Below are positions 6,286 through 48,916 of a DNA stretch of 64,000 nt, in pieces. The notes under the pieces were generated by a model, which did not search any database, was not told where the DNA came from, and saw only the letters and a list, made by a program, of their open reading frames with translations. The stretch is taken from positions 1,364,001-1,428,000 of the forward strand of contig NC_087442.1 in the NCBI RefSeq assembly GCF_036321535.1. Reading direction: 5' to 3'. How positions within the stretch are numbered: position 1 is the first letter of the stretch; each line of letters starts with the position of its first letter. This stretch comes from Camelus dromedarius. Lineage: Eukaryota. The position numbers and the translations under genes were made by a program.

Positions 6286-6641
6286 TAATTTAAATATTCA
6301 GGTGCCAATATGTCTGAAGAGGCTGTGTCTTTGCATCTCTGCATGTATCGTATCTTTAGTGAATGCGTTTTAGGGCTTGAGGAAAAATCGTTAGTTTTTG
6401 TGTTGACTTTTCCCAATAGGTACAAGTTACAAAGCTATAAACAGTTTGGAGAAATATGTAATCATTTTTCTGGTTTCTAAGTTTAAGTCATTTGTTAGGC
6501 CTCCCTCTCCAAGTTTATGTTTATTTTCACTGTTAAAAAGTACAGAACTTTGACTAGTGTCACAGGCTAGCTCTGTGATTTTCTTTGGCAGGACTTGTCA
6601 GTGTCTAACTCATCTTTCTTCCGTTGTTCTCCGCCCTGCAG

Positions 6642-6745
6642 GTTTGTGGAACCTTGCTTCTCTCTTTTCCAATCTTTGTTTATTTGTGTTGATGCCCTTT
6701 GCCTTTTTCTTTCTGGAATCAGAAGGTTTTGCTGGCCTAAAAAAG
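6642..6745 (+). CDS. LMBR1: LMBR1 coding exon (human exon 5), 104 nt
   Basis: ctgcag|GTTTGTGG...AAAAAG|gtaagt; translates (G)LWNLASLFSNLCLFVLMPFAFFFLESEGFAGLKK, matching recalled human LMBR1. Confidence 0.98.
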
Positions 6746-8499
6746 GTAAGTGAATTGTGTTTTAGAATTAAATGTACTAAATGAAGAAGTAAATACCAGT
6801 CTTGTTGAGCTAGGAAAACGAGGCTTCAACAGCCATTTTACTGGATTGTAAAAAGTTTAATAATAGCCTCTTGTTAATATTAATAATGTTTTTACAATAC
6901 TACTAATAGTGTCACATATTAAGTTGTTCCACACGTCCACAGGGAGGAAGTCGTCCTTTGACCTTTGAGTGCTTTGGTAGTATGTGCAAAGTTGGTGGGG
7001 TACTCTTCTGTTGAATGAACGAGCCTGATGCAATAGCTATTACTCCTTTCTTAGGCTGTCTCACTTAGTGTAAAGCATGACAGGAAATTCTAAAAACCTT
7101 AAAATGTATCTCGTTGTGAAAGTGTTTCACATCCAGTGTTTTCAGGAGAGTGGCATGTTATACTGCTCCCCCGGATAGGCAGATCCCCAGGGTACTGTGA
7201 CTTACTGCTGTTAGGTGAATGTGGGAGGGTCAGAGGTGGGCAAAACAGGAGACTGCGAGAGCAGCTTAAACAGTTGGTCCAGACGTTACAAATGCTAGTA
7301 ACTCCGTCTGTCCTTGAACATAACGACTTAAAGTGAAGGGAACAGCATTTCTGTTTACAGCTTGCTGAGCTCTTTGCTGTAAAAGCTTGGAATATACTGC
7401 AAGGATTTCAGGTGACTTTTTGGGTGACTTTTAAACATGACAAAATGAGTTCTAGTGTTGCGTTTTATAGACATTGTTCACCTTTTAATTCTTAGGAGGC
7501 TTATTCATACTCACACTGTGACGCGTGGAGTGAGTGTGCCCATGTGTCTTGTCAGGTAGTGCGCCAGCTAAGTGGAGCGGCATGGGGAGCTGCCAGCTGA
7601 GTGTGATCGTTACTACGGTTTCTCACGTAGCTTCTTGTGCTTCTTAGGGACGCAGTTGTTCGGGTGTAACATTTCGATAGTTCTTCTGATTTTAAGCCTC
7701 AGGTATAGCGCGTTTTTGACCTGTACATTGAAGGGTGCCATGACAGAATCACTGAGAGGCGACACGTGCGTTGTTTTAGTGGGCTCATTTTTCTGTTTTC
7801 CATATATTCTTCCATGCTTTAACAGTCTGCTGCTGGGAACTAACAGTTGGTTTTGTATTTAGTCTTATGCACTAAATTGTTTGTTGTATTTGGCGGTCAA
7901 ACCGGCATTGAGAAAACTGGCTTTCCTATATTTGTTTTTTATAATGGTGTTTTTAAACTATTTAAGTTACCCATGTAATGTGAAAGAATTATATAGTTTC
8001 CGTTTAAAAAGCTGTGTGTTCATAATTTCTTGAATAATTATAGGAAGTTTTATTGCTGAAAGGGATTTAGTTCAAACCCTCCTTTTATAAGGAGGAAACT
8101 GAGGTCCAAAGATATTAAGTGTTATTAAATTGTCTAAAAACCACATATGCACAATTGCAGAACCAGAACTGAGACCCAGGGGTTGCTTCTAACCTCCCCA
8201 AAGCATGCATGCTTTTTGCATGCCAGCACTGTGCAGAGCACAGCTAAAGCCAACAAGGTAGGTGACGTGGCCGGGACAAATAAGGTGAAGGAGCAGAGGG
8301 GACCGTGGCACGCTGGCAGAGGGAGGAGCCGGGAAGGGTTCTGAGTGGGTGTGCCAGGCGGTGGGAGGGTGAAGGGACAGCGGTCTGCAGGCTGACAGCC
8401 CAAGCTCTCGGAGAGCAGGGTGGGAGCATGACACACAGCCAGGCTGAGCTCATCGGAGCACTTGAGAAAGCAGTTTCTGTAGAATTTTGGAGCCTTTTG

Positions 8500-8880
8500 A
8501 TGAGTATTCATTCATTTGACAGAGTTTCACCAAGCATTTCCTAAGTGGTAGTTGTCATGCTATTATAGGAGCTTGCTGGGGACAGAGATGAAAAGACATC
8601 ACTTGCACTCAGGGGATGAGCAGAGGAAGAAGTCAGAAACGCAGGCAGAACCCCTGTGGCGGGTGGACTTCTGTGCAGCAAGCCGCGCCGGGAGGGGTGC
8701 CGAGCTTGGCCTGGGGAGCCCAGGGAGGCTTCCCAGGGGGAGTTAGCCTGCTCTTGCTCCGGGACTCGAGGGTGAGCTCCCAGGCCCGAGCACAGGCCGG
8801 GGTTCCAGCTGAACTGACGGAGTGGCTGGTACTCAGCTGCAGAACAGAGAACGATGAGAGGTGGCTCGTCAGGGTCACAT
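8500..8880 (-). mobile_element. L2 3' fragment
   Basis: attcattcatttgacagag...ggggacagagatgaaaagac is a reverse L2 terminus. Confidence 0.55.
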
Positions 8881-10014
8881 CCTGGAGGCCTGAGTCTCTA
8901 CCAGATGGTGTACAGCAGGGAATCGGCAAAGGATTTTTGATAAGAATTTCTGCATCTACTTTTATTTAGGCAAATTTAGAGATAAATACACATGTCAGAA
9001 TTTCAGCACGTCACGAGGGGAGTGAACACGTGCACCACACAGTGCAAGACTGGTTTAGAGACATCACCACACTGGCTCAGCCACGCGCCCGGCTCTGCTA
9101 AACCGAGCGCTTCAGTGTGTGTCCCTGCAGTTGCCGTGTTGGGGTTTGCTTTAATAAATACGCAGTTCTCCCTTCCCTGCCTCTGCCTCGTGCGATCTTA
9201 CCGAGCAGAAAAGACCGGCGGCGAAGCTCAGTGTTAAATACATTTTCACGTTCGGTATCAAAGTATGCTGCTTAGTTACACGTTCTGTGAAAACCTAGTT
9301 ACTAGTTAGATTATTTTCAAAAGCACTGTGCAATGTGGACACACCCCTTGTCTCCAGATTATTTTCCTCCCTTCTTGTGAACTAACCAGCTAGAAAAGGG
9401 GCCTGGCCAAATCTGGAGCAGAGTTAGCACCCACCTCTAGAATTAACCCTGGTCATGTGTCGCTATTCTCCGGTCCCCCTTACAGACTGCGGTCAAAGCG
9501 GGGAGTCAGCCTGGGGGTGGGGGGACACAGAAGGTAAGAGAAGCTGTTTTACACATACAGCTGTACAGGAGTTCTGCCCTCTAATTTTTTACTTCTAGTC
9601 TCTTTATACAAGATTAAAAGAATGCCTTTTCTAAGCGCATCTGTCTGTTTGTCTCCTCAAAATCTGTCAATGTCACCAGCTACACTTCATGATCTCAGAG
9701 GGGACTGACATGTTGAGTGATTGTAGGGTGTAGTCGACGTGACCATTCCAGTTAATTCCCAGACACAGCAAAGAGTCTAAAAAGGGGGGGAGAAGGCACA
9801 GCTCAGGATGGTTACCGTTTAGTAGACTTGGGCAGCTGGGGAATGAAAGGAGTTGTAGAAACCAGATTCAAATGTTTGGTTTTTAACGCTCTCAAAGGAA
9901 GGAGGGAGACGGGTCGTGGCTCGGAGGAGACGAGATAGGATGATTCTGCTATTAGTGTGCTGATGGGGAGGGGCCCGGGGAGAGAGTGCAGGTACTAAGG
10001 TGAGAAAATTTATC

Positions 10015-10190
10015 TTTGGTGCCAGACTGCCTGGGCTAGTTATGTCAGCTAGACCACAGGTTTTCTTTCTGTAAAATGGATGTAGTCATGATCGTTACCC
10101 TACTGTTTAATTTGGAGGATTGAATGAGGGGTGATTATTCAGGTCAGGCGTATAGGCCGGGGTTTAGCTCAGTCTGTGTCAAGAGCTTGG
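10015..10190 (+). mobile_element. MIR SINE
   Basis: tggtgccagactgcctggg...tctgtaaaatggat...ggattgaatgag. Confidence 0.7.
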
Positions 10191-10899
10191 TGCATCTGAC
10201 TGGTGGGTCTTCTAGAGGACATCCATGTGACGGGGATGGAGCATTAGAAAGCAGCAAAGTACAGCAGAGTCAGCTCTTGATTACTCACATATTGTTATCT
10301 TTGGCAACTTTAAGATTCCAGGTGACTTTCCCCATTTTGAAATGGCATGTAGTGAAGGAGAATTGAAACTGCCTGAAGAGAAGGTACGTCTAGACCCTGG
10401 GGGAAGTGTTTAGAGAGCTTTCAAGTTGGGGAATCGTGGCATGTTGTTTTATAATACTCACATTTTTCAGTTTTAAAATCAATTACTTGGAAGTTGCAAG
10501 GGTTATTGTTAACGTTGTACATTTAAGTCTAACTGTGTAAAGTGTATGTCTGAGCCTTTCAGCGTTGTGCCTTCCTGTTGGGTCAGGCCACTTGGTAGCA
10601 CTTGCACAGGTTCCGAACAGCGCTGGGGCAGATCTGGGCTGCTGGCTGCCTCGCTGTCAGGAACTCTGCTGCTCTGCCGGGGCGAGCAGCCCGCTGACGT
10701 CTGCAGCGCGCTTGCTGGCAAGCGTGTGTACTTGTGTGTATCCTTTAAGGCCCATTGCTGACACATCTGCTTCCAAGGGGACACTGAGGACACCTTAGAA
10801 AACACTTCTAGTTGGTAGATTCAGCGCAGTGACTTGCGTAACGACGAGCTTGTAACGCGGTGAAGTTAAACGTCCTTTCCCCTTCGGCCGCCCTCCTGG

Positions 10900-11180
10900 C
10901 GCTGTTTTACTGCAGCTGCGTCTGGTGGGCCCCTGACTAGCGTGTGGCCCCGCCAAGCCCCCACTGACTCCCCTGGGCAGTCGGTTTTAAAGCAGCCCCT
11001 TGCACACTGTGCCGGGACGCGGAAATTGGCCACTAGCCACGGCGGATGCAGAGCTTGAATTGAAAATCAAATTAAACAGAATTCTCTACTTAGTTTTTAA
11101 TTAAACCACTATGTTAATTCAAACAGGCCGTTTCAGGCCTGGGGGGTTGACCATGTCCTTTCAAGGGCCTTAAGTCTCCT
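10900..11180. promoter_or_regulatory. Probable pre-ZRS (pZRS) conserved element
   Basis: Lies ~0.7-1 kb 5' of the ZRS, where pZRS maps in human and dog; non-repetitive with clustered homeodomain TAAT/ATTA cores (CAAATTAAAC, TTTTAATTAAAC, GTTAATTC). Boundaries are approximate and positional. Confidence 0.5.
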
Positions 11181-11891
11181 TTCTTCTCTGTGCTTACCGT
11201 GGTGTGTGTTTCTTTTTCACTAGGACCGTCTCCTCGCCATTCCCGTTCTTTATAATTCTCAAGAGTAGGAGAGTGTAAGTGGTTTTGGTAAAGCGGGTTT
11301 TTTTTGGGTTTTTTTTTGGTAAGAAGGTAACTTTTATCTTGGCATTCTTACATTCACAGTTAAATATTTCTCTCATTTAGATTGTTTCACTGTTACCTGC
11401 ATATATTGTATCAGGCGTTACATGTTCACGTGTGTGTGAACCTGACACCGTGCTTGCATCTTGTTTCAGCTCTGATAAAGAGGCTGCATCTGCGGGGTTT
11501 GGCTGTGTTTTGTGGTAGAGATGATTCCTCCACAGTTTTTATCTGGGTCGCTCGGTCATACACCAGAGGACAAGGGTCCGGGGGTTGACAGCACTCTGTT
11601 GCTGCTACATCTCAGATCAGCAGTGCGAGTTTCTCTCCCTACTCTGCCTCACAGAGACCTCTAGATTATCTGGGGTGATGTCAGAAGATGGTTTTCAGTT
11701 GCATAATGAACTCCGAAAGTAACCTCTGGCCAGGGTTTAGATGGGAGTTAGGAATGTGTTTGCTTCATATGGTATCTTAACATCTTACTTTGAATTTAAA
11801 AGACATGAGAAAAAAATTCAACAACTTAGTGAAAGTAAAAAAATCTCTTCAGTGACAGATTATTTCATAAACCAAAGATGTTTCTGGGAGT

Positions 11892-12710
11892 AACTTTATA
11901 TTGTGCTTCACATTAATGCCTATCTTTGATTTGAAGTCATGGCATAAAATTTAACATAAGTGACAGCAACATCCTGACCAATTACCCAAGCCATCCAGAC
12001 GTCCCTAAATGTCCAGAACATAGCACATGGTCTGTGGGATTAAGAGGTTAACTCCTATAACTTCAAACGAAGTGCTTGATAATAAAAGCAAAAAGTACAA
12101 AATTTGAGGTAACTTCCTTTCTTAATTAATGAGACTGACCAGGTGGAAGCGGAGGGCTGGGTGCTGGTGCTCGGCAGGTCTATAAAGCTGAGCACCGTGA
12201 CAGCACCATGGAGGAGGAACNNNNNNNNNNNNNNNNNNNNNNNNNNNNNNNNNNNNNNNNNNNNNNNNNNNNNNNNNNNNNNNNNNNNNNNNNNNNNNNN
12301 NNNNNNNNNNNNNNNNNNNNNNNNNNNNNNNNNNNNNNNNNNNNNNNNNNNNNNNNNNNNNNNNNNNNNNNNNNNNNNNNNNNNNNNNNNNNNNNNNNNN
12401 GAAGTCCAGCTCGGGCTCAGTGAGCTTTCATTGCGTTCTTTCATTATTTTTGCTCGTTTTTGCCACTGATCATCCATAAATTGTTGGAAATGAGTGATTA
12501 AGGAAGTGCTGCTTAGTGTTAGTGGCACATGCGCATATTTGGCATGTTTTTGTGGGTGAGAGGAAATCACGTACACAAAGGGAAACTCCTGCTGGGAACC
12601 TTTCAAGGAAATTTACCTTGGGTCTCGTTTTGATCTTGGTGTTTATTACAGAAAATGGAGTCATATCTCACCAACTATTGTTATGTGTTAATGTGATTTT
12701 CCCAACACCT
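11892..12710. promoter_or_regulatory. ZRS (ZPA regulatory sequence / MFCS1), long-range SHH limb enhancer; centre in N gap
   Basis: Matches recalled human/mouse ZRS on both sides of the gap (TAATGCCTATCTTTGATTTGAAGTCAT..., GGATTAAGAGGTTAACTCCTATAACTTCAAA, GAGGTAACTTCCTTTCTTAATTAA, ATCCATAAATTGTTGGAAATGAGTGATTAAGGAAGTGCTGC, ...TTTTCCCAACAC); ~5.2 kb into LMBR1 intron 5, as in human. Confidence 0.97.
12221..12400. other. N gap, 180 nt, inside the ZRS
   Basis: Run of N. Confidence 1.
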
Positions 12711-13329
12711 TTAAGAAAAAAACCTCATTCAGTAATTTATTAACAAAAGTCCTCTACCCTCCCACAATTGGGAGGACTAATTTTGTGCCTAGAAACAACA
12801 TGGCTAAGAATGGTTATTTTCAAAACATTTAATTCTGGTAGTGTTGTTATACGTGAGGTTCCTTTTGGAATTGTGCCTCTACTGTAAAACGCGGGGTTCT
12901 GGTAATGTACACGGAGCATTTCAGACATTGAAGCTTGAAGTAGAGGATTGCAGAAAAAGACCATGAAAGGATTATTTTGAGGACAAGGTGCATTTGTTTC
13001 ATTTAAAATTATTTGCGTTTATAAGGATTTTGAATTAAAAATCATTTAGTTAATAAAATGACATTAATTTTGTCACTGTTCTTAGTACAATTGCCTGTTG
13101 GAGGTGACTGGATTATAATTTCAGTAGCAGTATCTGAACTGCTGTTGAACAGCACCTGTGTGTTTAAAACACACCACGCAGCTCCCGCATACTTTGTGAT
13201 GGTTCCATACTTTGAACTGGACCGTTGTGCAGCACCTTCATCTTTGTCTCCAGTTATCTAAGGAGAGATTTCTGCTCTAAGGCTAGACTGTCTCTTCATT
13301 TGTGTAATAGTATAGCAGCAAAACTATAA

Positions 13330-13480
13330 GCTCTAGCATTCAGAAGGCCTGGACTTAAATCTTGACTCTTCTTTTTACTGACCTGGGGCTTTAGACACGT
13401 TTCTTGGGGTCTCCATCTGCATAATGGGCTGGCAGTACTCACTCGTCCTTGGGTAGCTGAGGGGCTTGATTACTTCACTT
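13330..13480 (+). mobile_element. MIR SINE
   Basis: cagaaggcctggacttaaatcttgactct...ccatctgcataatggg. Confidence 0.6.
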
Positions 13481-16400
13481 AACCTGTTTGTACACCAGCA
13501 GGACGCAGTAGGAGCAGCGGTTGTTAGATGCGTGAGTGTGCCAGCTGTGTGCCAGCTGGCAATCATCAGGAAGATTTGTGTAGGATTACACTTTACATGT
13601 GATAGCAAAATGAGGTAAGAAATTATAGTGGTGTTGACATAGTCGGCCTTTCAGTTTTCTTTTTGAAATAGAAATGATTTTATCTTATAACAGTATGGGT
13701 TGTAAAAAAGAGGTATTATGTTTAATAGGTAACTGAATTTCAAGCTTTATTTTATATGCTGATTAAATTACTAACTAATGTCTCATAATATGTTAAATGA
13801 GGAGAAGTTTTAGTAGGGAGGAAATAGAAAATCACCAGGTTCAGATTTTAAAGTAATTATACTTTCAATTAAACTGACCCTAAGACTTCTGATATTCATA
13901 AAACGGTTTTATAGATATAATTATTGCCATCGTTTAGAGTCTCTTTTCTAAAACTTTTTTTGGGGGAATTGAAAGTACCCACCCTTGGTTGGAATGAACT
14001 TTATTTGAAAGTAAAATTAAATGTCAGATTAAACGCTGCCTGGAGAGCTGCCTGCATGATCATGATATGTCCCACAGCCTGTGGGACGAGAGCTCACCCA
14101 GGATGCCAGGGTTTGGATTGTTAAAATCTTCTATTTATTTGGCATTTAAACTCATATTTATTTGTCTATAAAATCGTTTATTCAGCACGTCACAGTGTTA
14201 ATCTTCTGATCTCTATGAAATGTATGCCAGTGTAGCTGAAACTTGGTATCTGCTTTACAGCCCATTTATTTGGCCCACTTGGCCCAGAAATAAAAGTGGT
14301 GTGTTCAGACACAGCAGAGGCAATAGGACTGCTCGACAGTTTTGACATCAGATAATATTTTGGTTGCAGTATATCTACTTTTCTTCAAAACTTAAGTCAT
14401 TAATAGTTATATTACTTAAAAATTTATTGGTTTGCACACTTTCTGTTAAGGAAAGGAGATTCTCATTTAGAAAGACAAGTTCTTACTGTTATAGAGTGAT
14501 TGAATTTTAAAGCGCTGAAGTGTTAAAAAATACATAAAATGTATGTTCTTTTAGTCAATAAAAATAAGATGAGCAGGCAAAAACAAAAAATAAGGCTACA
14601 TCAATAATGGAAAAAGAATCAAATGTACTGAAATGATCAGTGTAAAGGAAGCATTTCCTGAGTGATGGCTCCTGTGAGATCCAGTGTGTTCCTGTTATCT
14701 TTCCTAGAACACAAAGAAGAAATTTTAAGTTGTTTTATAATGCTGGATTTAAATACTTTTATACTTGCATATTTTAGTTGGGATTAATATTTGATGTTTC
14801 TCGTTACATGTTAATTAATGACTATTAAGTTTTATAAGCAGTCTTTTAAACTGACTTGTGAAGGACTTAAAATTTAAAAAAATCCTTTTTGAAGTATCAG
14901 AAAGATTTATTTGATCTCTTGATGGTTTTTGCTTCCTTATTAAATGCCTAGAATTAAATGATATATCTGATTTAGTTTCTTAGAAGAATTTAATGAAGCA
15001 CCTTATGCTGTGATAAGAACTTACCACATAACTTCAATGCATACTGTGATTCAGTATTCTGAATAAGATTCCCCTTCTCCTTCTGTAATCACCTTGGTTC
15101 AGGTTTCATCACTTCTTACTTGGATTGCTTAAACCACTGCCCATCTGTGTTTTCTACTTCCGGTTTTGTTCCCACACAAAGTAACCTCCACACCACCTTC
15201 TAGCATTGCTTTCTCAATAATGCTGCGTCTGTAACTCACCTCCATAAAATCTCCAAGGACCAAAACTGAACAGGCACAACGAAACTTAAATGCTAACTGG
15301 ATAAGTGATTCCCCGGTTGGGGCAGGGAGGTGGTTACAAGGTGGTTCAGGACCACGGGTGCATTGAGGCTGGGAGCTGGCACTAAAGCCCCACTGAAAGC
15401 CCTGGGCAAAAGAGCATGCTTGTCTCCCAGACTCACACACGTACCCTGCCCATGGCAGAGGAGGGCTGTCAGCCTTAGTTCTGGGCAGACGTCTCCCCTG
15501 AGAGCTAGTCCACAAGCGTCTCCCTCCCAGGAGTTGGGGTTCAGTCAAAACCTGTATTGTTGGGAGACCCCAAGCCAAGAAATCAGCATAAAAGCTTTGT
15601 CAAAGCCTTATGCATCATGTTATCATTTTAACCTAATGTATTGTTGACTAAATTAGAATTTGAAGTGTTTTATATAAATATATAATTAATGTTGGTTTTA
15701 GAAAGTTGACTTAATATAATTTGAGATACATAATATATACAAATTTTTGAGCTGATACTATTTATGACATGGGCTGTTTAATTACCTTTATATTAATTGC
15801 ATGAGAAAACTCAAGACTTGACAACAAACATAAAAGCAGGCCTAAACAAAACCTGATTTCATTTTATCCTAGCTTTTTTCCATTTTAAACTTACCCCCTT
15901 TCTTAGTAATTTGATATTGGTTTAGTTCTTAAGGTGTTACCACTCCTCCAAAGCCAAGGATGAATGACACGGTCTGCTCTGTTTTAGCTGCCTTTTCTGT
16001 GAGTTTTCCCCAAGAGCCAATATTTTAATCTATCTGTAGTTAATTTTGTGACATGATTAAAAAGAGTGACTCTAAATACATTCTTTTCTGTTATTCTAAA
16101 GCATTGTATATAGTATTATTACTCAACAATTATTTTTTAATATTTTAAAATTCTTTTCTATAATCACATATATTTTTAGACTTTTTGCAGCGTGTAGTGC
16201 CTGGAATCACTGCTGTTTTCTTACTTTTCTTACTGTCTTTTTATTTTTCTTAGTCTGTGATTTCCCCTGGGCAGTTCTCCATAGATTTGATCCTAGCTGC
16301 TTTCTCTCATTTCGGGATTTCTCAGAACTACTTCTCCGCTGATGGCTCCCTGTCTTCTAGCATAATTAATTCATGCAGTTAGTTCCTGTTGACCACTTAT

Positions 16401-16663
16401 TGTATGCTGGGTACTGCTACGGCTGCTAGGGGCAGTGCAGATTGATTGGTTATTTATTATGTAATTTTCATGTCTTCTGTGGTTAAAAGAAAGTATGTTT
16501 ATTAATCCGTCATCTTGAGCCGATGTCCCTGATTCCTCTCTTTCTACCTGTTAGCTTTACCAGCCCTTTGTCTGGAACTCAGTTATTGTTAATTTGGGGA
16601 CATTCTTTGCCCTTGGAGGCCTTGGAGGTCTGTAGTCCCTGCTTGTGTCGGCTCTGATTTCAT

Positions 16664-16682
16664 CAGCAAGTAGGCGGCGCTG
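16664..16682 (+). promoter_or_regulatory. Candidate CTCF site (possible orthologue of mouse Lmbr1 i5 site)
   Basis: CAGCAAGTAGGCGGCGCTG fits about 17/19 positions of the CTCF core by eye; ~4 kb 3' of the ZRS in intron 5, forward orientation. Confidence 0.45.
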
Positions 16683-19162
16683 TCTTTTGACCTCTCCGCT
16701 TTAGCTCTGCAGCTGTTTTAGCCTCTCGTGGCCTTAGTGTTGTTTAAAGAAGATCTTTTCCAATCTACTGTTCAGAAATTCCTTATCAGCATTCCAGGAT
16801 GATTCCTACAAATGTACAGGCCCTTTCTAAGTGCGTCTGTGTTCCAGGATCTTTAATGTTTAATCTCCCTAAGTCTTACTTGGCTTGGGTGAAGCAAACT
16901 CTTGAGGCTGATGATTTTGGCTGATTCTCCTGTGCATCTTGACTTCTATCAGTTTTTCATTAATATTTTAATTATAATTTAAACAAGTTTAGAGAAAGCC
17001 AATTAACCCCACATTGTATTTTATATCATTCCAAATTACCTGTCAACATTTGTACTTGGATTATTGTGTAATTATAATTAGTGTGTACATATATTTTATG
17101 TCCTTCTTACTTTAATAGTTTATTTTGTGTACATAAGTTTTCTAGTGCCAGGAAAAATTGTCCAAGACTTGGAAATGGGCAGAAGAGATCCTGGGTATGT
17201 ATGAGTGGAGTGTTGGGCCCTGTCTAGTGGGTGCCCTGTCTGGGGAGTATCTGATCCTATAGGGGGGTGCAGTTTTGGCTGATTTTCTGTTGACTTGGCT
17301 ATAATACATCTACTTAGGGTTAGAGTTAACTTGTAGGAAACTGAGAGCAATGCAAATTAATTTTGTCTGGTAGAGATATAATTGATTTCTTCCCTGTACA
17401 AAAGATAGCTCCAAACATTTCATTTTATTGTCCCACAGGGTATTATCCAGTTTTGCATCTGTTAGTAAATTGATTTTTAATATTTCTGGTTATCTAAGCT
17501 CTTCAGATTCTCCTTTGACCTGGTTTTAACAGAAATTAAAACCATATGCTAAAGGGTGCGAAGAACAGAAGAGACCAGGGTACTCAGAAAGGAGCTGCAG
17601 TCAGCAAGCAATAGTCACACTTGGCTGTGGGCTAAAGCCGAGCTTGGGTCCTGATAGTTGAGAGCTGGTAAATGCTTGCAAGTGTCCACCGGGGCACAAG
17701 TACCGAGTCACCTCACGCAGAACCAGATCCTGCCTGTCTAGATCCACTGTCACCAGAAGCAGAAGATGATAAAGAAAAAAGCAGGACAAAAACTCCTGGG
17801 TATGTAAAGGTGAGCAGGGACCCGAAGATGACCAGACATTTGGGAAAAGCCAACATTGTGAGAGGGACCAAATTTGATGTACTATTCAAGTTAATAGACA
17901 AAGAGAAGATTTCAGAGACATTTGAAAATATTTGATCTAGCATTTTAGACTGCTTTTTGGCAGAAGGAATTAAAGATGTCTTGTCCTCAGTGTTGCCAGA
18001 AATGAAAGTTCTCCTGAGTCATTCTGATAAAAAAAATCAAGTCCATACAGTTTCTAGGATATTTCTACCAGCCTTTAAGGAATAGATAACTCTAATTTCA
18101 ACAAATTTTTCTGGAGATTTGAAGATGGAACACTCACAATTGCATTTTTATGGGACTAGTATAGTCTTGATGCTGAAAGCAGAAAAGGATAGTATGAGGA
18201 AGGAACGTTATATGCCATTCTTTTTCATGAATACTTGCCAACCAAAAAATATGAAGCTGAATCCAACTACGTACATGAAAGATCATCATCAAAAGCATTT
18301 TATTTCAGCCACCAGGGTTGGTTAACATTAGAAAATCTGTATCTTGTTAGCAGAGTAAATGAGAGAAAAGAATTTAGTGAGCACCTCAGAAGAGACTCAG
18401 AGCACATCCCTGAGGTCAGGGACCGTTCAGGATCAGAAAGCACAGTGAGACTGAGAGGGAGCGCTCTCGACCTGGCCGTGCACATCCACCCAAAGCCTGC
18501 AACTGACATTGTTCTCAGTAGTAAAATGTTAGAAGTATTCACTTTAAAATTGCAATCCTATATCGAGTACTTTTATTTCTAATAATAGACAACACTGTAG
18601 TAGATTTCTTAACCAGTACAATTAGAAAAGAAAAGAAAAATTGAAAGGAACAAACAAAATAGTAATGATTAACAGATAATACTGTCTCTTGACAAATCCT
18701 ATATATAGAATCTAAATTATCAATTCAAATAGGAAAATTTAGCAAGGAAGCTGGATAGAGAATTAATACAGAAAAACCAATAAATAACAGCAACAAACAG
18801 AAAATCTAATTATAAATACCTTTTATAATAGCAAGGCAGCCTAAGGTATATTGAAATAAACTCAACAAGTGATTTCTAAAACCTTCTTGAAATAATATAT
18901 GGAAACAAAAAAAATCTTACTTAAAGATGTTAAGAAGGCCTAGATAAATGGATAGATATTCAATGTTTATTAATTTCTTTATATGGTAAAAATATCAGTT
19001 TTCAAATTATTTTTTAAAGTCAATGCAGTTCTAATAAAATTTCTGAAAGGTTATCTATGACATGTGACAAGGAGATAGTAAAATTCTTATGGAATGGCAG
19101 AGAGCCAAGAAAAGCCAAAGCAGTTTTGAAGAACATGGTGATGGAACTTACTCTGTCAAATA

Positions 19163-19290
19163 NNNNNNNNNNNNNNNNNNNNNNNNNNNNNNNNNNNNNN
19201 NNNNNNNNNNNNNNNNNNNNNNNNNNNNNNNNNNNNNNNNNNNNNNNNNNNNNNNNNNNNNNNNNNNNNNNNNNNNNNNNNNNNNNNNNN
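19163..19290. other. N gap, 128 nt
   Basis: Run of N. Confidence 1.
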
Positions 19291-19357
19291 AGATACTTTT
19301 CTCCACACCCATTAAGGGGGTTTACTGGGGGAAAAAAACTCATAAAGTTACAAGTAT

Positions 19358-19514
19358 NNNNNNNNNNNNNNNNNNNNNNNNNNNNNNNNNNNNNNNNNNN
19401 NNNNNNNNNNNNNNNNNNNNNNNNNNNNNNNNNNNNNNNNNNNNNNNNNNNNNNNNNNNNNNNNNNNNNNNNNNNNNNNNNNNNNNNNNNNNNNNNNNNN
19501 NNNNNNNNNNNNNN
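19358..19514. other. N gap, 157 nt
   Basis: Run of N. Confidence 1.
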
Positions 19515-21094
19515 ATCGAAAGCTAGGACTCCACAGATATTTCTACACCCGTTTTCGTGGCAGGATTATTTACAGCAGCCAAAGGTGGAAACAACTCAAG
19601 CATCCATCAGTGGATTAATAGATAAAATACGGTATGTATATACAGTGGAATACTGTTTAGCATTAACAAGGAAGGAGATTCTGACACGCTACAGCCTGGA
19701 CGATCCTAGAGAGCTTGTGGTCAAACACCACAAGACAAATACTGTATGATTCGGATTCATGGAGACAGTAGACGGGGGGTGTCCAGGGCTGGGCGTTAAG
19801 TGTGGAGTTACTGTTTAGTAGTGCAGAGTTCAAGCTGGAGAATATAAAAAGTTCTAGAGGCGGGTGGTGGTGGTGATCGCCCAACTGGTGTGAATGTACT
19901 TAATGCCACAGAACTGTACGCTTAAAAATGCTTAATGGTACATTTTATGTTTTACGTATTTTACCATAAGAAAAAAAAGTAAATAAATGACAAACGCAGC
20001 AGTTCAGGTTGGTGGTTACCTTTGGGCAGGTTGGTGAGGCGGGTGTGTGTGGTGGGTAGGGCCACATGGGTGCACAGTGGTTATGGCGATGTTCCTTTGA
20101 GTGGTGTATCCACAGGTATTTAATAGACATGCAAAGTGCAACAGTGTACAGACAGACACCTCAGAGATATTGTGGGCTTGGTTCCAGACCACCGCAATAA
20201 AATGATTATTGCAATGAAGTGAGGCACGTGATTTTTTTGGTTTCCCAGAACCTATAAAAGTTATGATTACACTGTACTGCAGTCTATTAAATGTGCAATA
20301 GCATTGTGTCTAAAAAACAGTGTGCATACCTTGATCAAAAAGTACTTCGTTGCTAAAAAATGCTAACCGTCGTCTGAGCCTTCAGTGAGGTGGCGTCTTT
20401 GTGCTGGCGAGAGAGCCTCGCCTCGGTGTTGATGGCTGCTGACTGATCAGGGTGTCTGTTGCTGAAGGCTGGGTGGCTGTGGCAATTTCTTAAAATAAGA
20501 CACTATGAAGTTTGCAGCATTAATGGACTCTTCCTTTCGGGAACAACTTCTCTGTAGCAGGCAGTGCTGTTTGACAGCCTTTCAACCACGGTAGAACTTC
20601 TTTCAAAATTGGACTCAATCCCCTCGGACCTTGCCGCTGCCCTGTCAGCTAAGGTTCTGTCACACCCTAAACACTTTGTTGTCATCGGGACACCGTCACA
20701 GCGCCTTCACCAGGAGAGGATTCCGTCTCAGGAAACCACCTGCTCTGCTCACCCTTTTCCGTGCACGTTTACCGTGAGGCTGCAGCAGTTCAGCCCCAGC
20801 TTCAGGCCCCACGTCTAATCCCAGTTCTGCCGCTGTTTCCACCACGTCCGCAGTTCCTCCCTGCACTGAGGTCTTGAACCCCCCGAAGTCCGCGAGGGTT
20901 AGAGTCCACTTCTCCCGACTCCTGTTAGTGTCGATGCTTTGCCCTCGTCTCATGAGTCTTGAGTGTTCTTAATTGCATCTGGAATGGTGAATCCCTTCCA
21001 GAAGGCTTTCAGTTCCTTCTCCCAGACCCATCCGAGGAATCAGTCTATGGTAGCTACAGCCTTACAAAGTATGTTTCTTCTATAGTAAGACTTG

Positions 21095-21218
21095 ATAGCT
21101 ATCTTGATTGTGTGGTGGTTTCATAGGTGTATACATCTCTCAAAGTTCGTTGAATTGTACATCTGAAATATGTGTAGTTACTGTGCAGGAATCATACCAC
21201 AATAAAGGTGTTAAAAAA
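21095..21218 (+). mobile_element. Short old L1 3' tail nested in Tigger1
   Basis: atcttgattgtgtggtggtttcataggtgtatacat...gaattgtacatctgaaatatgtg...caataaaggtgttaaaaaa. Confidence 0.65.
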
Positions 21219-22006
21219 TAAGCAGCGGTTTTGGAAAGGAATCTTTTTTTTCGGAGCAGTGGGTCTCAATAGTGGGTGGAAAATATTCAGTAACCACGCT
21301 GTAAACGGGTGTGCTGTCCCCCAGGCTTTGTTCCGTTTACAGAGCGCCAGCAGAGTAGCTTTAGCGTCATTCTTAAGGGCCCTGGGGTTTTTGAAATGGT
21401 AAATGAGCACTGGCTTCAACTGAAGTCACCTGTCCTTTGAAGCTTTGAAGCCAGGTGTTAAATTCTCTCTGGTGTGAAAGTCCTAGACGGCATCTTCTTT
21501 CATTATGAGGCTGTCTTGTCTGTGTGGAAGCCTGTCGTTCCGTGGCCCACCTGCGCTAACTGACTGTCTTGGGCAGCTTCTGGAGAGCCTGCTCAGCTCC
21601 TGCCGCAGCTCCTGCCGCGTCACCTGCTCTTTGGCATTACTGAGACGCAGTCTTTCCTTAAGCCTCAGGGACCAACCTCTGCTGCTTCAGACTTTTCTTC
21701 TGCAGCGTCCTCACCTCCCCCGGCCGTCATGGAACTGAAGAGGGTCAGGGCCTTGCTCTGGATGGGGTTTGGCTGAAGGCAGTGTTGTGGCTGGCAGATC
21801 TCCTCTGCAGACGCTAAAGCTGCCTCCACGACAGCAGTAAGGCTGTTTCCTTCTTACTATTCTTGTGTTCACCGGAGCAGCCCTTTCCATTTCCTTCAGG
21901 AACTTTTGTTTTGCCTTCACACCTTGACTGTTTGGTGTGGGAGACCCAGCTTTCAGCCTCTCAGCTTTCCACGTTTCTTCCTCTCTGAGCTGCATCGTTT
22001 CTGGTT

Positions 22007-22425
22007 ATTTTTTGTTTTAATTGAAGTGTAGTTGATTTGCAATGTTGTGTTAGTTTCTGGTGTACAGCACAGTGATTCAGTTTTACATCTGTATATTCTT
22101 CTCCATATTCTTTTTCATCATAGGCCATTAGAAGATAGTGAATTCAGCTCCCTGCGCTGTACGGCAGGCCCTTGCTGTTTATCTGTTTTATATATAGTAG
22201 TTGGTATCTCCAAATCCCGAGCTCCTAATTTATCCCTCCCTACCACATTTCCTCCTGGTAAGCATAAGTTTGTTTTCTTTGTCTGTGAATCTGTCTCTCT
22301 TTTGTAAATAAGTTCATTTGTGTCATTTTTTAAGATTCCACGTGAGAGTGATACCATACGGTATTTGTCTCCCTCTGCCTGATGGATTTCACTTAGTGTG
22401 ACGATTTCAGTCCGTCCGTGTTGCC
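22007..22425 (-). mobile_element. Cetartiodactyl-type L1 3' end nested in Tigger1
   Basis: T-rich start then ttgaagtgtagttgatttgcaatgttgtgttagtttctggtgtacagc...; degenerate TSD gcatcgtttctggtt (21992-22006) / gcatcacttctagct (22426-22440). Confidence 0.85.
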
Positions 22426-25400
22426 GCATCACTTCTAGCTTTTGATTTAAAGTGAGAGATGTGTGACTCATCCTTTCGCTTGAATGCTTGGAGGCCCTTG
22501 TCAGGGAGTTAACTGGCCTGATGTCAATACTGTTGTGGTCAGGGGGTAGGGAGGCCCGAAGAGGGGGAGAAAGATGGGGGAACAGCCGATAGGTGGGGCC
22601 GTCAGAACACCCACAACATGTATTGAATAAGTCCGCCATCTTAGATAGGTGCGATCATGATGCCCAGACGGTCCCAGTAGTGAGATCACAGGCCACTCAT
22701 CACAGGTCACCATAGCAAATATGATAACGGATGAAGAAGTTTGAAATACTGTGGGAATTCCCAAAATGTGACAGAGAGACACAGAGTGAACAAACACCGT
22801 TGGGAAAATGGCCCTGATAGACTTGCCACAGACTTTCAATTGGCAAAAAAATGCAGGTATCTGCGAAGTGCAGTCAAGTGAAGGTCAGTAAAACGAAGCA
22901 GGTCAAACTCAGTACGTAAGAGCAGAAAGGGAAAAGGTGGTTTATTTCTTGGGGATGGTCTCATGTTAACCAAACTTATGTGAAACACCAAAATGTCAAT
23001 TTACTGATTTTTAATGGAAAACTGGGAAATACTCATGCATGGGTGTACGCCTCCCCTCACAAAGTAGCTGTTACCGAGAGCTGGTGGGCTGTGGACGTCG
23101 GGGTGGGACGGGCCCAGCGCCGCCGACGGGCTGTTGGTCTGGATTCAGAGCAGACGGCCTAAAGCGTTGTGTGCGTGTTTCCTGCTTAGTTCACTGTCAG
23201 TAGGGTAGCTTGTCTGCGGTGTTTTGGAATTCTTAGTCCTTTTTGTGTAAATGCACTCTTTGCTACATAAACAGTAAGACACTATTACCTAAATTATGAG
23301 GAATTGCTTTTATGCTATGTTCTGCTCCTTAATGTCTTGTACATTTTGCTGTGGTGATGTAGTAAGTAATAACCCTTATGATCTTTCTTCTGTTGTGTCT
23401 GTCTTGAGCTCGTGCCTGGGTGCTTTAGGAGAGGCAAGGTAAGGTATTGGCAGCAGTGTGCTCTTATAGGAGTGAGCGTTTGACCTCAGCCAGAGTGTGC
23501 TATTATGGAACTGAAAACTAATGTTCCAGTAGAAGAAATGTTTGTGCATTTTGCTTTAGTTCCTTTACTAAAACTAGAGATTGTCTTGATTATGTTTTAA
23601 GCATTCTCCTCCACCTACTATTTCCATATCCGTTTGTCTTTTTATGTCTTATTTCTGTCGTATGGGGAGGTAGAAAGCGCAGGCTCCAAGAGCTGGTAGA
23701 CCTGGAGTGAGAGAGAGTGTCTGGCAGGCCTCAGACAGGGCGACCACGGGCGGGTTATCTACCCGATCTTGGGTGTGAGCCTTCTTGTTGATAATACATT
23801 TTCCTTTATTGTGAATATTCAATCAGCACATACAAAGCAGCTATGTAGTAGGAGCTTTGCAAATGTTAGTTCTTATCTCTTCCATCAAGTTTATAACTAA
23901 AGAATTATTAGCATGGAATTAGAAGAAAAGATCTGACTTGCTGACCATTAAATTGTCTTGATGTGATGCAGTGTACTGAAAATTGTTTTTTTCCCAAATC
24001 TAGAATTTTGTTTAAACATTTTGATATAAAGTCCCTGTAGTCTTTTTACAATTTAGTTCTTTCATGTACATGTTGGAAAGTTGTTGTATTAATTTATTTA
24101 CTTGCAACCTGGAGGATTTTGCTTGATATCATGAGAAATTTCTGCCCATAAATTTAAATACGGTGACCATCTTATTTAGTTCAGTGAACTGGCAATGTTA
24201 GTGTTATTATTTTAAATTATCCTAAAGTACTTTCTTTTTGTCAAGTTTTAATAACTTGAGAATATTATATTTTTAGTTTTTCTATTTTCAATAACTGTAT
24301 TAAATAAATACATATATACATATGAGATAGACTGCAGAAAATATTAATATTAAAAAACATTTCACTATAGAGCTTAGCAACACTTTCTGTAAAGCTGTTT
24401 TCTTTGACGTGGGACCCAGACTCTTTTTGTCTCTGGTTCTAATGATTCCTTTGGGAGCTAAGGGGGAAATGTGTGGCACTCTAGGATGCCTGTTTGTAGT
24501 TTTTTCATGGTTTAAAATAATTAGCACCTGCCTTTATTTTCTGTTCTTTATTAGCGCTTCTATCGATCTTCCCCAGATGACTGCATGTATGTTTGGTGCA
24601 GTCTTGATGTCATTCTGAGCAAACCTTATCTTAATGTTACTAAGAGACCCTTTTTGTTAAACGGAAACAATGGCTTGATATTTATTTTAAATGTTCCGTG
24701 AATGTAGAAATTTTTCCCAGGCTTTCCTGATGGGTGGAGGCATAGTATATAAAATGGTGTTTACATACCTTCCAGGAGGTCAAGATGTCCATGCAAAATC
24801 TTGTTTAAATGTTCATCACCATAGAAACATATCAGCTTATTGTTAGAGCTTTTGTAAATATACTGTAATTTTCACTTCATTGATGTTCAGTACAGAGCAG
24901 TTAATGTGTAATTGGCCAGTGCAGAAATTTCAAGAAGCAATTGTATCATAACTATTTTAGTGTTTTAGACTTTACTTATTTAAATCTAAAAGAAATCTGA
25001 GTCTCCATGGGTTTAGCTTCTACTAGCTTATTTAATCTAATTTAAATTGTTATAATGTTGAGATAGTTGTAATTTCCAAAATAATAATGGTATGAAACTA
25101 ATGTAGTTAACTATATAGCATATGCTTCTTAAAAACAATACGATGTTTCCTTGGCAGAAAGAAAGTACTTTATTTTGATGGTGTTTTCTACTGAAACACT
25201 GAGTGCTTATTACACTATGATTTTAATAAAAGGGGTGGAATCACAGATTTATGTTTTGGGGGGAGGGTTAGGACAATTACTCTTACGGGAGATAAAAATA
25301 TTATGAAGTTCATGAAACCCTATTGCTGTATGGCTTAGTAGAAGCCTTCAAAACTATGTGAAGCAAGTACAACTGTTGGTAAGTAGTTCTCATAGTTCTG

Positions 25401-26658
25401 TGATCTTGTGTTCAGGAGACTTTTCTTACTTTTTAAGATGAACAATGGGAACCTTCTTCCACTGACAATGTTTCGCCACTTTGTCGTTTGCAGGGTATTT
25501 CAGTAAGTTATTCTGACATCTGGTACATCTTTTAGCTCAATGTATGCAAGAATGGACCCTCCCCTTGGGGCTTCCTAGCTCCCGATTGTGACTCTTAATG
25601 GTAAAATGAGCAGTAGGCATATTTTTGCTTATACTGTCCTGCTGGTGATTAATGGTAGTGATAAAAGCTCTCACAGTGCTTTTCGTTACTTTGCAGACAG
25701 AACCACGTACAAAAGTTTAAAAACCTCACACAGTACATGCCACAAAGCCTGTGGCTTTAGGCTTTGTAGTATTTTAATGGTCTCAAGAAAGGTAGTGATA
25801 ACAGTTCACATATTTTGGGCATGCATATGAACCAGTTGATGCTAAATTAACAAGGGAAGTTCATTTGTTTTATCTGATTATTTATAGTCCCATCACTGTT
25901 CTTCTCTTTGTTTTAAAGTTGTTGAAGGTAAAAAATCTGCCGCATTGCCCCAGTGAACAGCCTTGCTACATTTCTCTATTGGTTTTGCTAAAGCTTATAA
26001 ATGTGATACTTAATTGATTTGGAGTTGTGCTGATTTTGTCCCATATAATCACAAAAAGAGAATAAAATTAACAAAGGGAAACACAGCTGTCCTAGCCTTC
26101 TAGTGGATTAAGTCGGAACAATGGTTGTTTCTGACCACATCAGTTATCTTCGATACTTCATAGACAGATATGATCATACTCTGTAATGCTGATGGCTTGC
26201 TCTGTGGCGGCCTTTTCTGTAGGTGTAGTCCTGATGTACTCTCTTTTATTTAGATTGATGGCTGAAAATGAGCAGATTTCTTTGCATGAGTGATTTACTG
26301 TCTTTCAAAAGAGATGTTGATCCATTTGAAATAAATGTTGAAGAGTTCATGTGCCTTGACTACAGAGGTGGTTTTTTTTGGTTAAATGTTTCTTATTTGG
26401 CTGCTTAAGCATGTAAATGTACATTTTAGACATTTCTTCTTGATACTATTCATATATTTGTAATAGAAGAAGTGCCTTGGAATTATATAGCTTGCTTCTT
26501 TTTAGAAAGACTGTTCACATGTAATTTTTAATCACATAAGAGATTTATTTGGGGGGGCTTAGTTTGTAAGTAAATGTGAATGAATATATGGATGTTTAAC
26601 CTTATTGTCACTTTTAGACAGGATAATACTTAGGGTGCACTTTAAATACTATCTTTTT

Positions 26659-26732
26659 TTTTAACTTTTTTTTTATTGATTTACAATCATTTTACAATGT
26701 TGTGTCAAATTCCAGTGTAGAGCACAATTTTT
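26659..26732 (-). mobile_element. Very short 5'-truncated camelid-type L1 insertion with perfect 12-bp TSD
   Basis: poly-T then attgatttacaatcattttacaatgttgtgtcaaattccagtgtagagcacaattt; TSD tactatcttttt at 26647-26658 and 26733-26744. Confidence 0.8.
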
Positions 26733-27014
26733 TACTATCTTTTTCTTAATGAGGGAATGTACTTTTTCTTTATGTAAACATAAAGGAGTAATTTTTAAAT
26801 TTAATTGTAGATTTTCTCTTTTTGACATAAATGCTACTTACAAACACTTAAGAAAGAGCTATATAGCATGTTAAATGAGGCGGTTGCTTTAACCAAGGTG
26901 TTGTTCAAAGAATTTTATATCAAGATTAAATTTAGGGAAATGACCAGAAAGTACTTGAGAGTACAGAGAGTACTTACGTCAGGTTTTGTTTTTGTCGGAA
27001 GCAGACTGTTAGTA

Positions 27015-27220
27015 GTCTACTCTGACTAGTGTGGTAACTGTTAGCCATATGTGGCTATACAAATTTAAACTAACTGAAGTTCAATAAAATTAAAAAATCT
27101 GCTCTTCAGTTAGAGTAGCTGTGTTCTAAGTGCCCCGTAAACAGCGATGGCTGTCAGCTGTCTCAGTGGATGGCACAGGATGGGGCATTTCCATCAGTAC
27201 GGAAATGTGTTGACAGTACT
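27015..27220 (-). mobile_element. MER3 (hAT-Charlie) MITE
   Basis: tagccatatgtggctatacaaatttaaa...atttccatcagtacggaaatgtgttgacag resembles reversed MER3. Confidence 0.7.
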
Positions 27221-27239
27221 AATCACACATAATTTGTTT

Positions 27240-28800
27240 TCTCTCCTCTGTATTTATTTTACACACTCTCCAAACAGCAGAAGAATAGCAGGGCCCACCT
27301 TTAAGGATATACTTGTGTAGCACCTCGGTTGGTTGGAGAGCGGTGCTAATGAGATTGGGGTTTTATTATTTGTTGTTGCATTAATGCATCGGTTTCCTAG
27401 TTGCAGGCCTGTACCTCTGTTAGCAAGGTGTGACAGAGTGACGTGATCAGATTTGCATTTTGAGGAGACCACATGCTCACTGCGATGTGGGTGGCAGGTC
27501 AGAAAGGGAGGGGTGCGGAGGACTACTAGCTGGGAGGCTGGGGGTCGCCCAGGCCAGGTGGGCACAGCGGGCGGCAGTGGAAAGGGAAGGGGGTGAACTA
27601 GAGTTGTGATGACTTGGGGGAATCGAAAGGGCTTGGTGTTTGACAGGACCAGGGTCCGGGATGTGTGTGTGTGTTTTGGGGAGGGGTAGGTGTAGCAGGG
27701 AAGGGCTGATGAGAATATTTCCACAGTGTCTGGCAAAACCAACAAAGTGAATAATGGTGCCATTTATTGAGGAGGAGCAGGTGTAGGGGATGAAATAATG
27801 AATTAGATTAAAAAAAAAAATTTTTCCCCTTACCAGAGGCACTGGGGATTGAACCCAGGGCCTTGTGCTTGCCAAGCGCATGCTCCACCACTGAGCTATA
27901 ACCCCCACCCCAAGTTTGATTTTAGTATTCATTTTAAGGTACCTGTGATATCTAAGGGGGAGATAGCTGTTGGGGAATATGGATCTTGGCCTCAGTGGCG
28001 AGATTTGGACTAAAGGTGTAAACTTGAGAGTCGTTGGCCACATGAGGAGTCAAGACCATCTAGGGAAGAAGAGAGCAGTCTGTCTGGTGGACCATCTTCA
28101 TCAGAATTGACCGAGTGCCCCTTTGGGCTGGTACTCAGGAACTGACAAGCCCCTGCTAAGTCCATTGCATGCTGACGTTCAAGAAGCACTGATACAGCCT
28201 GCGAAAGGACGAACGTCTAAGACTGAGCCACGGGAGAAACGGGACCTTCACAGACTGAGAGAACTGTGAATGGATACAGAGAGACCCAGGCCTGGGGGAA
28301 GGGCACTGTGGGGACCGCAGGCTGCCTGGCTCTGTCTCACTGAGGGAGAGGTCAGGTCTGCGGTCGTGGAAGAACTCAGGCATGAGATTGGGATCAAGGA
28401 GAATGGAAAACACGTCCAGGCCTCAGAGGGAATCGTAGTCAGCGGAGATCAGTATAAGGATCGCCGTGTGGCACTGAAGGCCCGCTTTAGGATGTAGGAG
28501 CAAAACTTCTCGTGGTTTTGTACATTTCTTCAACAGTGCTGAGAATTTGGAGTGAGCGTCCAGTGGCGTTAAGCTGGTGGTGGAAGTTAAAGGGACCAGG
28601 AATACTGGAATATTACTGATACTGAATCAGGATTAGAATATTGCAGTTCACCATAGGGCTTAGGCAAGTAAAAACAAGACTGACTGGAGGGCAGAGAGGT
28701 TCAAGGGAGGAGATAATGACAAGACAGAGCTCGGTTACAGGCGGAAAGGTCAGAGGAAGCCGGGAAGTTGTGGGCTGAGGGAGCACCTCCCAGCATGAGG
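27240..28800 (-). mobile_element. L2 fragments, interrupted by a SINE
   Basis: gtgacgtgatcagatttgcattttgaggagacc... and ggatcttggcctcagtggcgagatttggactaaagg...gagagtcgttggc are reverse L2 motifs. Confidence 0.7.
27821..27911 (-). mobile_element. tRNA-derived camelid-type SINE
   Basis: Reverse complement GGGG..TATAGCTCAGTGGTGGAGCATGCGCTTGGCAAGCACAAGGCCCTGGGTTCAATCCCCAGTGCCTC has A box TAGCTCAGTGG and B box GGTTCAATCCC; not a foldable full tRNA. Confidence 0.85.
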
Positions 28801-29129
28801 TCTCAGAGGTGGGCCTGGGAGACGGTGGGTCCGGTCCGTCCCTGTGCAGGAGGACGTAGTAGATTGAAGGTCGGGCTCATTAGGAGTTTGTCTGGAACTC
28901 AGGGTGGCAGGAGATATGAGAACTTGTTACGAACTGGGTGCTCATATCATCAAGAAAGATGGGGTTATATCTTCTTGGTCTTTACGTGGTAGGTGGCAAA
29001 GATGGGAAGAGTGACAAGCTGATATTAGAAGATGGTATAAAATTAATTGAGAAACACAAATGATATGTGAATTTCCAAGCCTTGGAGATTCCAAACACAA
29101 AGGCAACGATTTGCACTATTACAGTTACC

Positions 29130-29350
29130 CTCACTAAGCACCAGACATTGAGCTAAGCATGTTGCATATATTAACTCATTTGGTCCTTACGACAACCCCA
29201 TGAGGTAGGGGTGTTATTAATAAACTCATTCTACAAAGGAGGAAACTGAGGCACAGTGGTGTTTAGTCATTTGCCCAGAGCTACCAACACCAGTTGGTCC
29301 ATGACAGAAACAGGATTTGGACTCAAGCAGTCTGCTCCTAGAGTCGGGGC
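29130..29350 (-). mobile_element. MIR SINE, near complete
   Basis: ttaactcatttggtccttacgacaaccccatgaggtagg...gaggaaactgaggcacag...caggatttggactcaagcagtctgctcctagag. Confidence 0.85.
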
Positions 29351-32251: not shown

Positions 32252-32712
32252 GTACCATCACCCTGTTTAAATCAGTTTCTCTAGTGGTGACTCTGGTATG
32301 GGGTATAATTACACATGCACTTTTTAGAACATTTTAATAATGTTTTGTATGGTTATCCTTGTTAATTTACAAAATTAAAAAGACTTTAGACATGTTTAAG
32401 AAAAGAGATGAATGTTTGTGTGTTTCGTGCATGCAAAAAAAGCAAGCAACTTTTCAGACTTTTTTTTCCCTTCGGTTAATTGGTTTCTGTTCTTAAAATT
32501 CCATGGAGGCTGATTTTCTCCCTCCAAACAGGTTTTGCAAAAGGGTTATTTCCTGTTCTTCTAGTTTAGATCTTTTTATTGTACAATTTAGAAATTATAT
32601 GGTTTAGTAGACTCAGGCAATTATGATGTTTACTATACATTAATGTATAGTCAGTCTCTATCTTAATGTACAGTATTTTGGATGTACTAAAATATATTTA
32701 CATTTTTAATAG

Positions 32713-32781
32713 ATCTCTGGGAGTTCTACCTACCTTATTTGTACTCCTGTATATCATTGATGGGGTGTTTGTTACTTCTCT
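32713..32781 (+). CDS. LMBR1: LMBR1 coding exon 7, 69 nt
   Basis: taatag|ATCTCTGG...CTTCTCT|gtgagt; DLWEFYLPYLYSCISLMGCLLLL. Confidence 0.97.
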
Positions 32782-33004: not shown

Positions 33005-33232
33005 GAAAGAGAGGGGGAGGCGGGATAGAGAGAGATATGGTCGGGAGAGAGATGGAGAGATGATGAGGGGAAAGATGGTGGGGGGAGAGATGTGGGGAGA
33101 GATGGTGGGGGGAGAGATGGAGAGAGAGATGGTGAGAGGGAGAGATGGAGAGAGAGATCGTGAGAGGGAGAGATGGTGAAGGGGAGAGATGGTGGGGGGA
33201 GAGATGGAGAGAGAGAGGCGAGAGAGGCAGAT
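33005..33232 (+). repeat. Compound purine-rich tandem repeat (~15-nt unit GGAGAGATGGTGGGG with GA runs)
   Basis: More than 10 GAGAGATGG-type cores separated by G or GA runs; visible directly. Confidence 0.9.
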
Positions 33233-48787: not shown

Positions 48788-48916
48788 NNNNNNNNNNNNN
48801 NNNNNNNNNNNNNNNNNNNNNNNNNNNNNNNNNNNNNNNNNNNNNNNNNNNNNNNNNNNNNNNNNNNNNNNNNNNNNNNNNNNNNNNNNNNNNNNNNNNN
48901 NNNNNNNNNNNNNNNN
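48788..48916. other. N gap, 129 nt
   Basis: Run of N. Confidence 1.

Follow-up and report, generated by a model that had tools for sequence, protein, structure and literature searches.

The block at positions 11892-12710 of the analysed window (a 64-kb stretch of Camelus dromedarius DNA) is the orthologue of the ZRS, or MFCS1, which resides in an intron of LMBR1 and serves SHH as a limb-specific enhancer over a long range. We put the probability of this reading at roughly 0.97. A sequence-only reading of the same DNA had already named the block as the ZRS, and that claim is supported by the position in an LMBR1 intron, the sense orientation, the colinearity with the axolotl element and the contexts of 18 published variants. 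The copy is that of a placental mammal.

Among the long-range enhancers of vertebrates, the ZRS is the benchmark. Single-base changes within it lead to preaxial polydactyly, and its loss leads to truncated limbs. For annotators, its identification marks the most important non-coding element of the window. It is already known biology, as the sequence-only reading rightly remarked, and nothing new is added to it here. Two results are of practical use. The run of Ns in the element behaves as a mask that preserves length and hides the central subdomain, and each readable position of a known disease variant has the normal base.

Position of the block within LMBR1

The host gene was recognised through the open reading frame at 6557-6784, which matches the Pfam family LMBR1 (PF04791) with an E-value of 1.9e-7. 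Its exon part is followed by a donor site, GTAAGT, at 6746. One of the matching protein clusters bears the NCBI name 'limb region 1 protein homolog [Vicugna pacos]', and of the proteins retrieved, that of alpaca comes nearest to the LMBR1 exons (95%). In total, eleven LMBR1 exons were located on the plus strand of the window by tblastn with two LMBR1 proteins as queries, and splice signals were seen at most of their junctions. The main features are the following:

6641..6745, plus strand: LMBR1 coding exon, residues 107-141 (GLWNLASLF...GLKK); PF04791, 100% identity to LMBR1 proteins over 35 aa
6641, ~32125, 32712, 33795, 37669, 53360, 55492, 56214, 58986, 59298 and 60611, plus strand: starts of the LMBR1 exons by tblastn
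6746..32124, plus strand: LMBR1 intron with the ZRS, about 25.4 kb; the next exon runs from ~32125
11909..12693, plus strand (LMBR1 sense): ZRS core, about 785 bp, approximately human ZRS positions 1-780, supported by axolotl blocks and by published variant contexts
12221..12400, no strand: N run of 180 letters, approximately human ZRS positions 307-486 by the same numbering, covering most of the central subdomain

The block begins 5.1 kb into this 25.4-kb intron, between the exons for residues 107-141 and 141-183. LMBR1 exons flank it on both sides on the plus strand, and the block itself is in LMBR1-sense orientation. The extent of 11892-12710 given by the sequence-only reading does contain the core, and is slightly generous against the interval of about 11909-12693 that follows from human numbering.

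The literature places the ZRS in intron 5 of LMBR1. The host intron is intron 5, and the exon at 6641 is exon 5, if the gene has 17 exons, two of them downstream of the window. LMBR1 exons 1-4 and SHH fall outside the 64-kb window, and the intron number rests on the published count of 17 exons together with two further exons downstream.

Several further features of the window deserve mention. The LMBR1 intron at 59064-59297, between the exons at 58986-59066 and 59298-59390, carries U12-type signals: it starts GTATCCTTT and has TTCCTTGAT a few bases upstream of its 3′ AG, both being typical of the minor spliceosome. A GA-rich tandem array with periods of 12 and 27 bp occupies 33045-33226, in the intron that follows the exon at 32712-32780. 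Within the ZRS-bearing intron, a tRNA-like sequence is found at 27833-27907 on the minus strand (Rfam tRNA, 52.9 bits; tRNA-Ala(GGC) by ARAGORN), which is probably the head of a tRNA-derived SINE. An open reading frame of 230 aa (19057-19749), interrupted by the two N runs near 19.2-19.5 kb, may be LINE-1 ORF2, which it resembles.

The G+C content reaches about 0.47-0.53 at 8000-10000, 28000-31000 and 40000-44000, against 0.30-0.46 elsewhere in the window. These richer stretches carry many long mechanical open reading frames on both strands, and may represent clusters of repeats or further regulatory DNA. In mouse, the CTCF sites i5 and i9 have been described in the introns that match them; a strict consensus regex for CTCF, which is a crude instrument, found no site over the whole window.

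Colinearity with the axolotl element and human variant positions

An 821-bp axolotl ZRS is printed in PMC12176643, where it was used in a ZRS>TFP reporter. In a full-text literature search with exact strings from the window, ZRS context was met in this axolotl paper only (two strings); other literature matches to a 13-mer of the window were dismissed as chance. The comparison was made with 19 short blocks, taken in order from the axolotl element and located in the window, rather than as a full alignment. All but one of them (18 of 19) occur in the same order on the plus strand between 11942 and 12643, and each has a single plus-strand occurrence in the window, with the exception of three very short ones. 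The exact matches include stretches of 17, 20, 27, 21, 22 and 27 bases, for each of which the chance expectation lies between 7e-12 and 7.5e-6. At 12468-12515, two adjacent blocks combine into 48 consecutive bases identical to the axolotl ZRS. Furthermore, the N run divides the axolotl blocks by origin: those of the 5′ part are found on its left and those of the 3′ part on its right, all on the same strand.

The second line of evidence comes from published variants. Lim et al. 2024 (PMC10830414, supplementary tables) give known ZRS variants by human position together with 21-base contexts. Those contexts that lie in readable letters were assigned window coordinates by eye. Thereby 18 polydactyly-associated positions, from human 41 to 769, map to visible letters, and every one of them has the wild-type base; none of these 18 readable polydactyly-associated alleles is present in the window. 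The offset from human numbering to the window is nearly constant, from +11908 to +11914. The positions, each placed by its variant context, are as follows:

Human ZRS 41: 11949, wild-type A
Human ZRS 105: 12019, wild type
Human ZRS 131: 12044, wild-type A
Human ZRS 165 ('Dutch 2'): 12079, wild-type A
Human ZRS 252: 12166, wild type
Human ZRS 285: 12199, wild type
Human ZRS 287: 12201, wild type
Human ZRS 295: 12209, wild type
Human ZRS 297: 12211, wild type
Human ZRS 305: 12219, wild type
Human ZRS 515: 12429, wild type
Human ZRS 555 (Hx): 12468, wild-type G
Human ZRS 574: 12487, wild type
Human ZRS 619: 12532, wild-type C
Human ZRS 621: 12534, wild-type C
Human ZRS 739: 12652, wild-type A
Human ZRS 743: 12656, wild-type T
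Human ZRS 769: 12682, wild type

By this numbering, six bases at 11961-11966 are extra with respect to human. They are also found in the axolotl ZRS block GACAGCAACATCCTGAC, which makes it probable that human has a derived, shorter form.

The same landmarks describe the N run. Positions 305 and 515, the last landmark before it and the first after it among the contexts used, are separated by 210 bases both in human numbering and in the window, with an offset of +11914 at each. This equality on the two sides, together with the colinear axolotl blocks, implies that the flanks are continuous and that the run keeps its true length. Judged by its flanks, the run at 12221-12400 therefore behaves as a length-preserving mask over 180 real bases and not as a gap of estimated size; since the element is non-coding, reading frame plays no part in this test. 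It leaves 639 bases of the block readable, while 180 of the approximately 785 core bases are masked.

Several published positions fall under the mask: ETS-A (328-334), ETV site A (329, Belgian 2) and the WMS/Cuban cluster (396-407), as well as variant 417, which is labelled 'HAND2 site' by Lim et al. (PMC10830414). Published descriptions assign HOXD13 site 2 and E-box 2 to the centre, and neither is seen in the readable letters. The remaining experimentally defined HOX sites and the HAND2 E-box 2 fall under the N run. A placement of ETV site A/Belgian 2 at the TTTCT of 12118, beside ETS site 1, was considered and rejected, as the published position, 329, is masked.

In the window as a whole there are five N runs (12221-12400, 19163-19290, 19358-19514, 48788-48916 and 62106-62405), with what we would call odd lengths (180, 128, 157, 129 and 300). 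At least the one in the ZRS is, by the spacing of its flanking sequence, a mask and not an estimated assembly gap.

Predicted sites in the readable flanks and alternative readings

The ETS, ETV, HOX, E-box and homeodomain sites lie where PMC3314984, PMC12263586, PMC5561167 and PMC12267059 put them. The ETS cores, the HOX-type motifs, GGATTA and the GAAGT half site listed in the sequence-only reading are all present exactly where it had put them. The following sites were located:

11943..11949, plus strand: 5′-HOX-type CATAAAA, kept in axolotl as GCATAAAAT; contains human position 41 by the variant contexts
11976..11987, minus strand: [C/T]AATTA homeodomain (LHX2/9-type) site 1, CAATTA core at 11979-11984; one mismatch to the mouse 12-mer
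12037..12042, plus strand: GGATTA, kept in axolotl; near position 131 (12044)
12080..12087, plus strand: predicted HOXD13 site 1 of the 5′ subdomain, TAATAAAA; contains AATAAAA (12081) and adjoins 'Dutch 2' position 165
12112..12118, minus strand: predicted ETS1/GABPa site 1, ACTTCCT (AGGAAGT on the minus strand); inside an exact 20-mer shared with axolotl
12120..12131, minus strand: [C/T]AATTA homeodomain site 2, TAATTA core at 12123-12128; two mismatches, outside the core
12140..12145, plus strand: putative E-box 1, CAGGTG
12401: GAAGT half site, directly after the N run
12475..12480, plus strand: CATAAA HOX site of the 3′ part, 7 bases past the Hx position; inside an exact 27-mer shared with axolotl
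12501..12507, plus strand: predicted ETS1/GABPa site 3, AGGAAGT; inside an exact 21-mer shared with axolotl
12526..12531, plus strand: putative E-box 3, CACATG, likely a HAND2 site; human positions 619 and 621 lie just 3′
12561..12567, plus strand: predicted ETS site 4, AGGAAAT; inside an exact 22-mer shared with axolotl
12606..12612, plus strand: predicted ETS site 5, AGGAAAT; inside an exact 27-mer shared with axolotl
12650..12656, plus strand: predicted ETV4/ETV5 repressor site B, AGAAAAT (Lettice 2012); spans positions 739 and 743

The ETS sites stand out by number: the 639 visible bases contain four copies of the 7-mer AGGAA[AG]T, where its rate elsewhere in the window predicts 0.41. Lettice 2012 described five ETS1/GABPa sites with the pattern AGGAA(G/A)T, sites 1 and 3 being the strongest binders. 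The four visible matches, in their order along the element, fit sites 1, 3, 4 and 5, and both AGGAAGT copies coincide with sites 1 and 3. ETS site 2 should lie either under the N run or at its edge (GAAGT at 12401), since it is expected between sites 1 and 3.

HOX-like sites, E-boxes and the other short motifs are individually not above chance in number, and their weight comes from their conservation and not from their counts. For HOXD13, Ball et al. 2025 give the motif C/TAATAAAA, and Lim et al. 2024 (PMC10830414) attach the label 'HOX site' to the Dutch 2 variant. The CATAAA at 12475 is probably Hoxsite 4 of Lettice, a number that we assign by inference. GGATTA at 12037 has no factor assigned to it in the ZRS papers cited here.

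In the account of Ball et al. 2025, E-box 1 is near ETS1 and E-box 3 less than 20 bp from ETS3; these authors argue that E-box 3 is the likely entry point of HAND2. We took CAGGTG at 12140 as E-box 1 because it is the sole CANNTG near ETS site 1, and CACATG at 12526 as E-box 3 because it is the sole CANNTG within 20 bp of ETS3.

The homeodomain sites were located by means of the mouse 12-mers mutated by Bower et al. 2025, single 12-mers being in themselves not above chance. Two of the three [C/T]AATTA sites mutated in that work are present here with intact cores; the third was searched in the visible letters and not found there. Mutation of these sites in mouse abolished the long-range and not the short-range action.

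In the two visible flanks the element looks intact and ordinary. Factor binding, activity in the limb and SHH as the target of the block are what we infer from the conserved sites.

The main alternative is an orthologue of the ZRS with weakened or lost function, as in snakes, owing to changes under the mask or in the flanks. We consider it highly improbable. Such a reading can point to the 180 unreadable bases, to differences in the flanks (for instance GACCAATTACCC here, where the mouse 12-mer has T) and to the 6-base departure from human numbering between positions 41 and 105. Against these stand an intact ETS site 1, in the very region that snakes lost, and the presence of ETS sites 1, 3, 4 and 5, ETV site B, HOXD13 site 1, E-boxes 1 and 3 and two homeodomain motifs. 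In addition, the visible variant positions taken from the tables are wild type without exception (18/18), and the spacing across the N run is exactly that of human in their numbering. Our verdict on a ZRS disabled by changes under the mask is that nothing speaks in its favour.

It is similarly doubtful, with very little probability attached, that lineage-specific substitutions in the ZRS alter the dosage or the domain of SHH and matter for the limb form of the animal. Candidates for such a change could be the T-to-C substitution beside the first CAATTA motif and anything under the mask.

The block might also be a conserved non-coding element of another kind in the LMBR1 intron, one that serves some other target or tissue and resembles the ZRS in short motifs only; to this reading we attach a negligible probability. 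The sole argument for it is that short motifs alone are weak, single 12-mers being no more frequent than chance allows. The long exact matches, colinear with a functionally defined amphibian ZRS, speak against it, as do the near-exact matches to 18 published ZRS variant contexts, with consistent numbering.

Just as negligible is the reading as a coding exon or as a gene for a structured RNA, for which one could invoke the mechanical open reading frames of 54-75 aa that run across the flanks. It was rejected on the Pfam and Rfam results: the longest stop-free stretches of the block (54 and 71 aa) had no Pfam match, the best Rfam scores in the block were 16.6 and 22.6 bits, where the gathering scores are 50 and 80, and tblastn gave no alignment of LMBR1 proteins within the block. 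The description of the block as non-repetitive and non-coding in the sequence-only reading holds, for the block is also unique in the window by self-BLAST.

Proposed action of the ZRS and comparison with known enhancers

With the ZRS as the preferred reading, a mechanism may be proposed from the literature and the conserved sites. The element would be open in limb mesenchyme and would act in the distal posterior limb-bud mesenchyme. Several low-affinity ETS1/GABPa sites, AGGAA(G/A)T, would add up to set the width and the posterior boundary of the SHH domain, while 5′ HOXD and HOXA proteins on the HOX sites may raise the level of expression stepwise. HAND2 would work through an E-box. FGF-induced ETV4/ETV5 on AGAAA-type sites could provide anterior repression. 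The [C/T]AATTA motifs of the LHX2/LHX9 type may enable the element to reach the SHH promoter across almost 1 Mb, and CTCF sites in the neighbouring LMBR1 introns may support a preformed contact between the ZRS and SHH. According to published work, one gained ETS or HOX site, or a slight rise in affinity, results in SHH expression on the anterior side and in extra digits.

The human and mouse ZRS (mouse core mm10 chr5:29314881-29315667, 787 bp) share with the block the LMBR1 host intron, the strand and about the same length. The 21-mers of the 18 variants match with 0-6 mismatches each, as counted by eye, and with wild-type alleles. ETS sites 1, 3, 4 and 5, ETV site B, HOXD13 site 1, E-boxes 1 and 3 and homeodomain sites 1 and 2 are in place. 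The differences consist of scattered substitutions and, by human numbering, of the six extra bases between positions 41 and 105 that axolotl also has, and of one base fewer in the T-rich stretch at 515-555. This T-rich stretch varies among mammals (Lettice 2012).

The axolotl ZRS resembles the block in its colinear blocks across both flanks. It differs in that the landmarks bracketing the centre are 236 apart by a hand count, against 227 here, and in that the sequence between shared blocks has diverged. Lastly, the REX range-extender beside the Sall1 limb enhancer (PMC12267059) is a separate element without enhancer activity of its own, whereas the ZRS carries the motifs as part of the enhancer itself.
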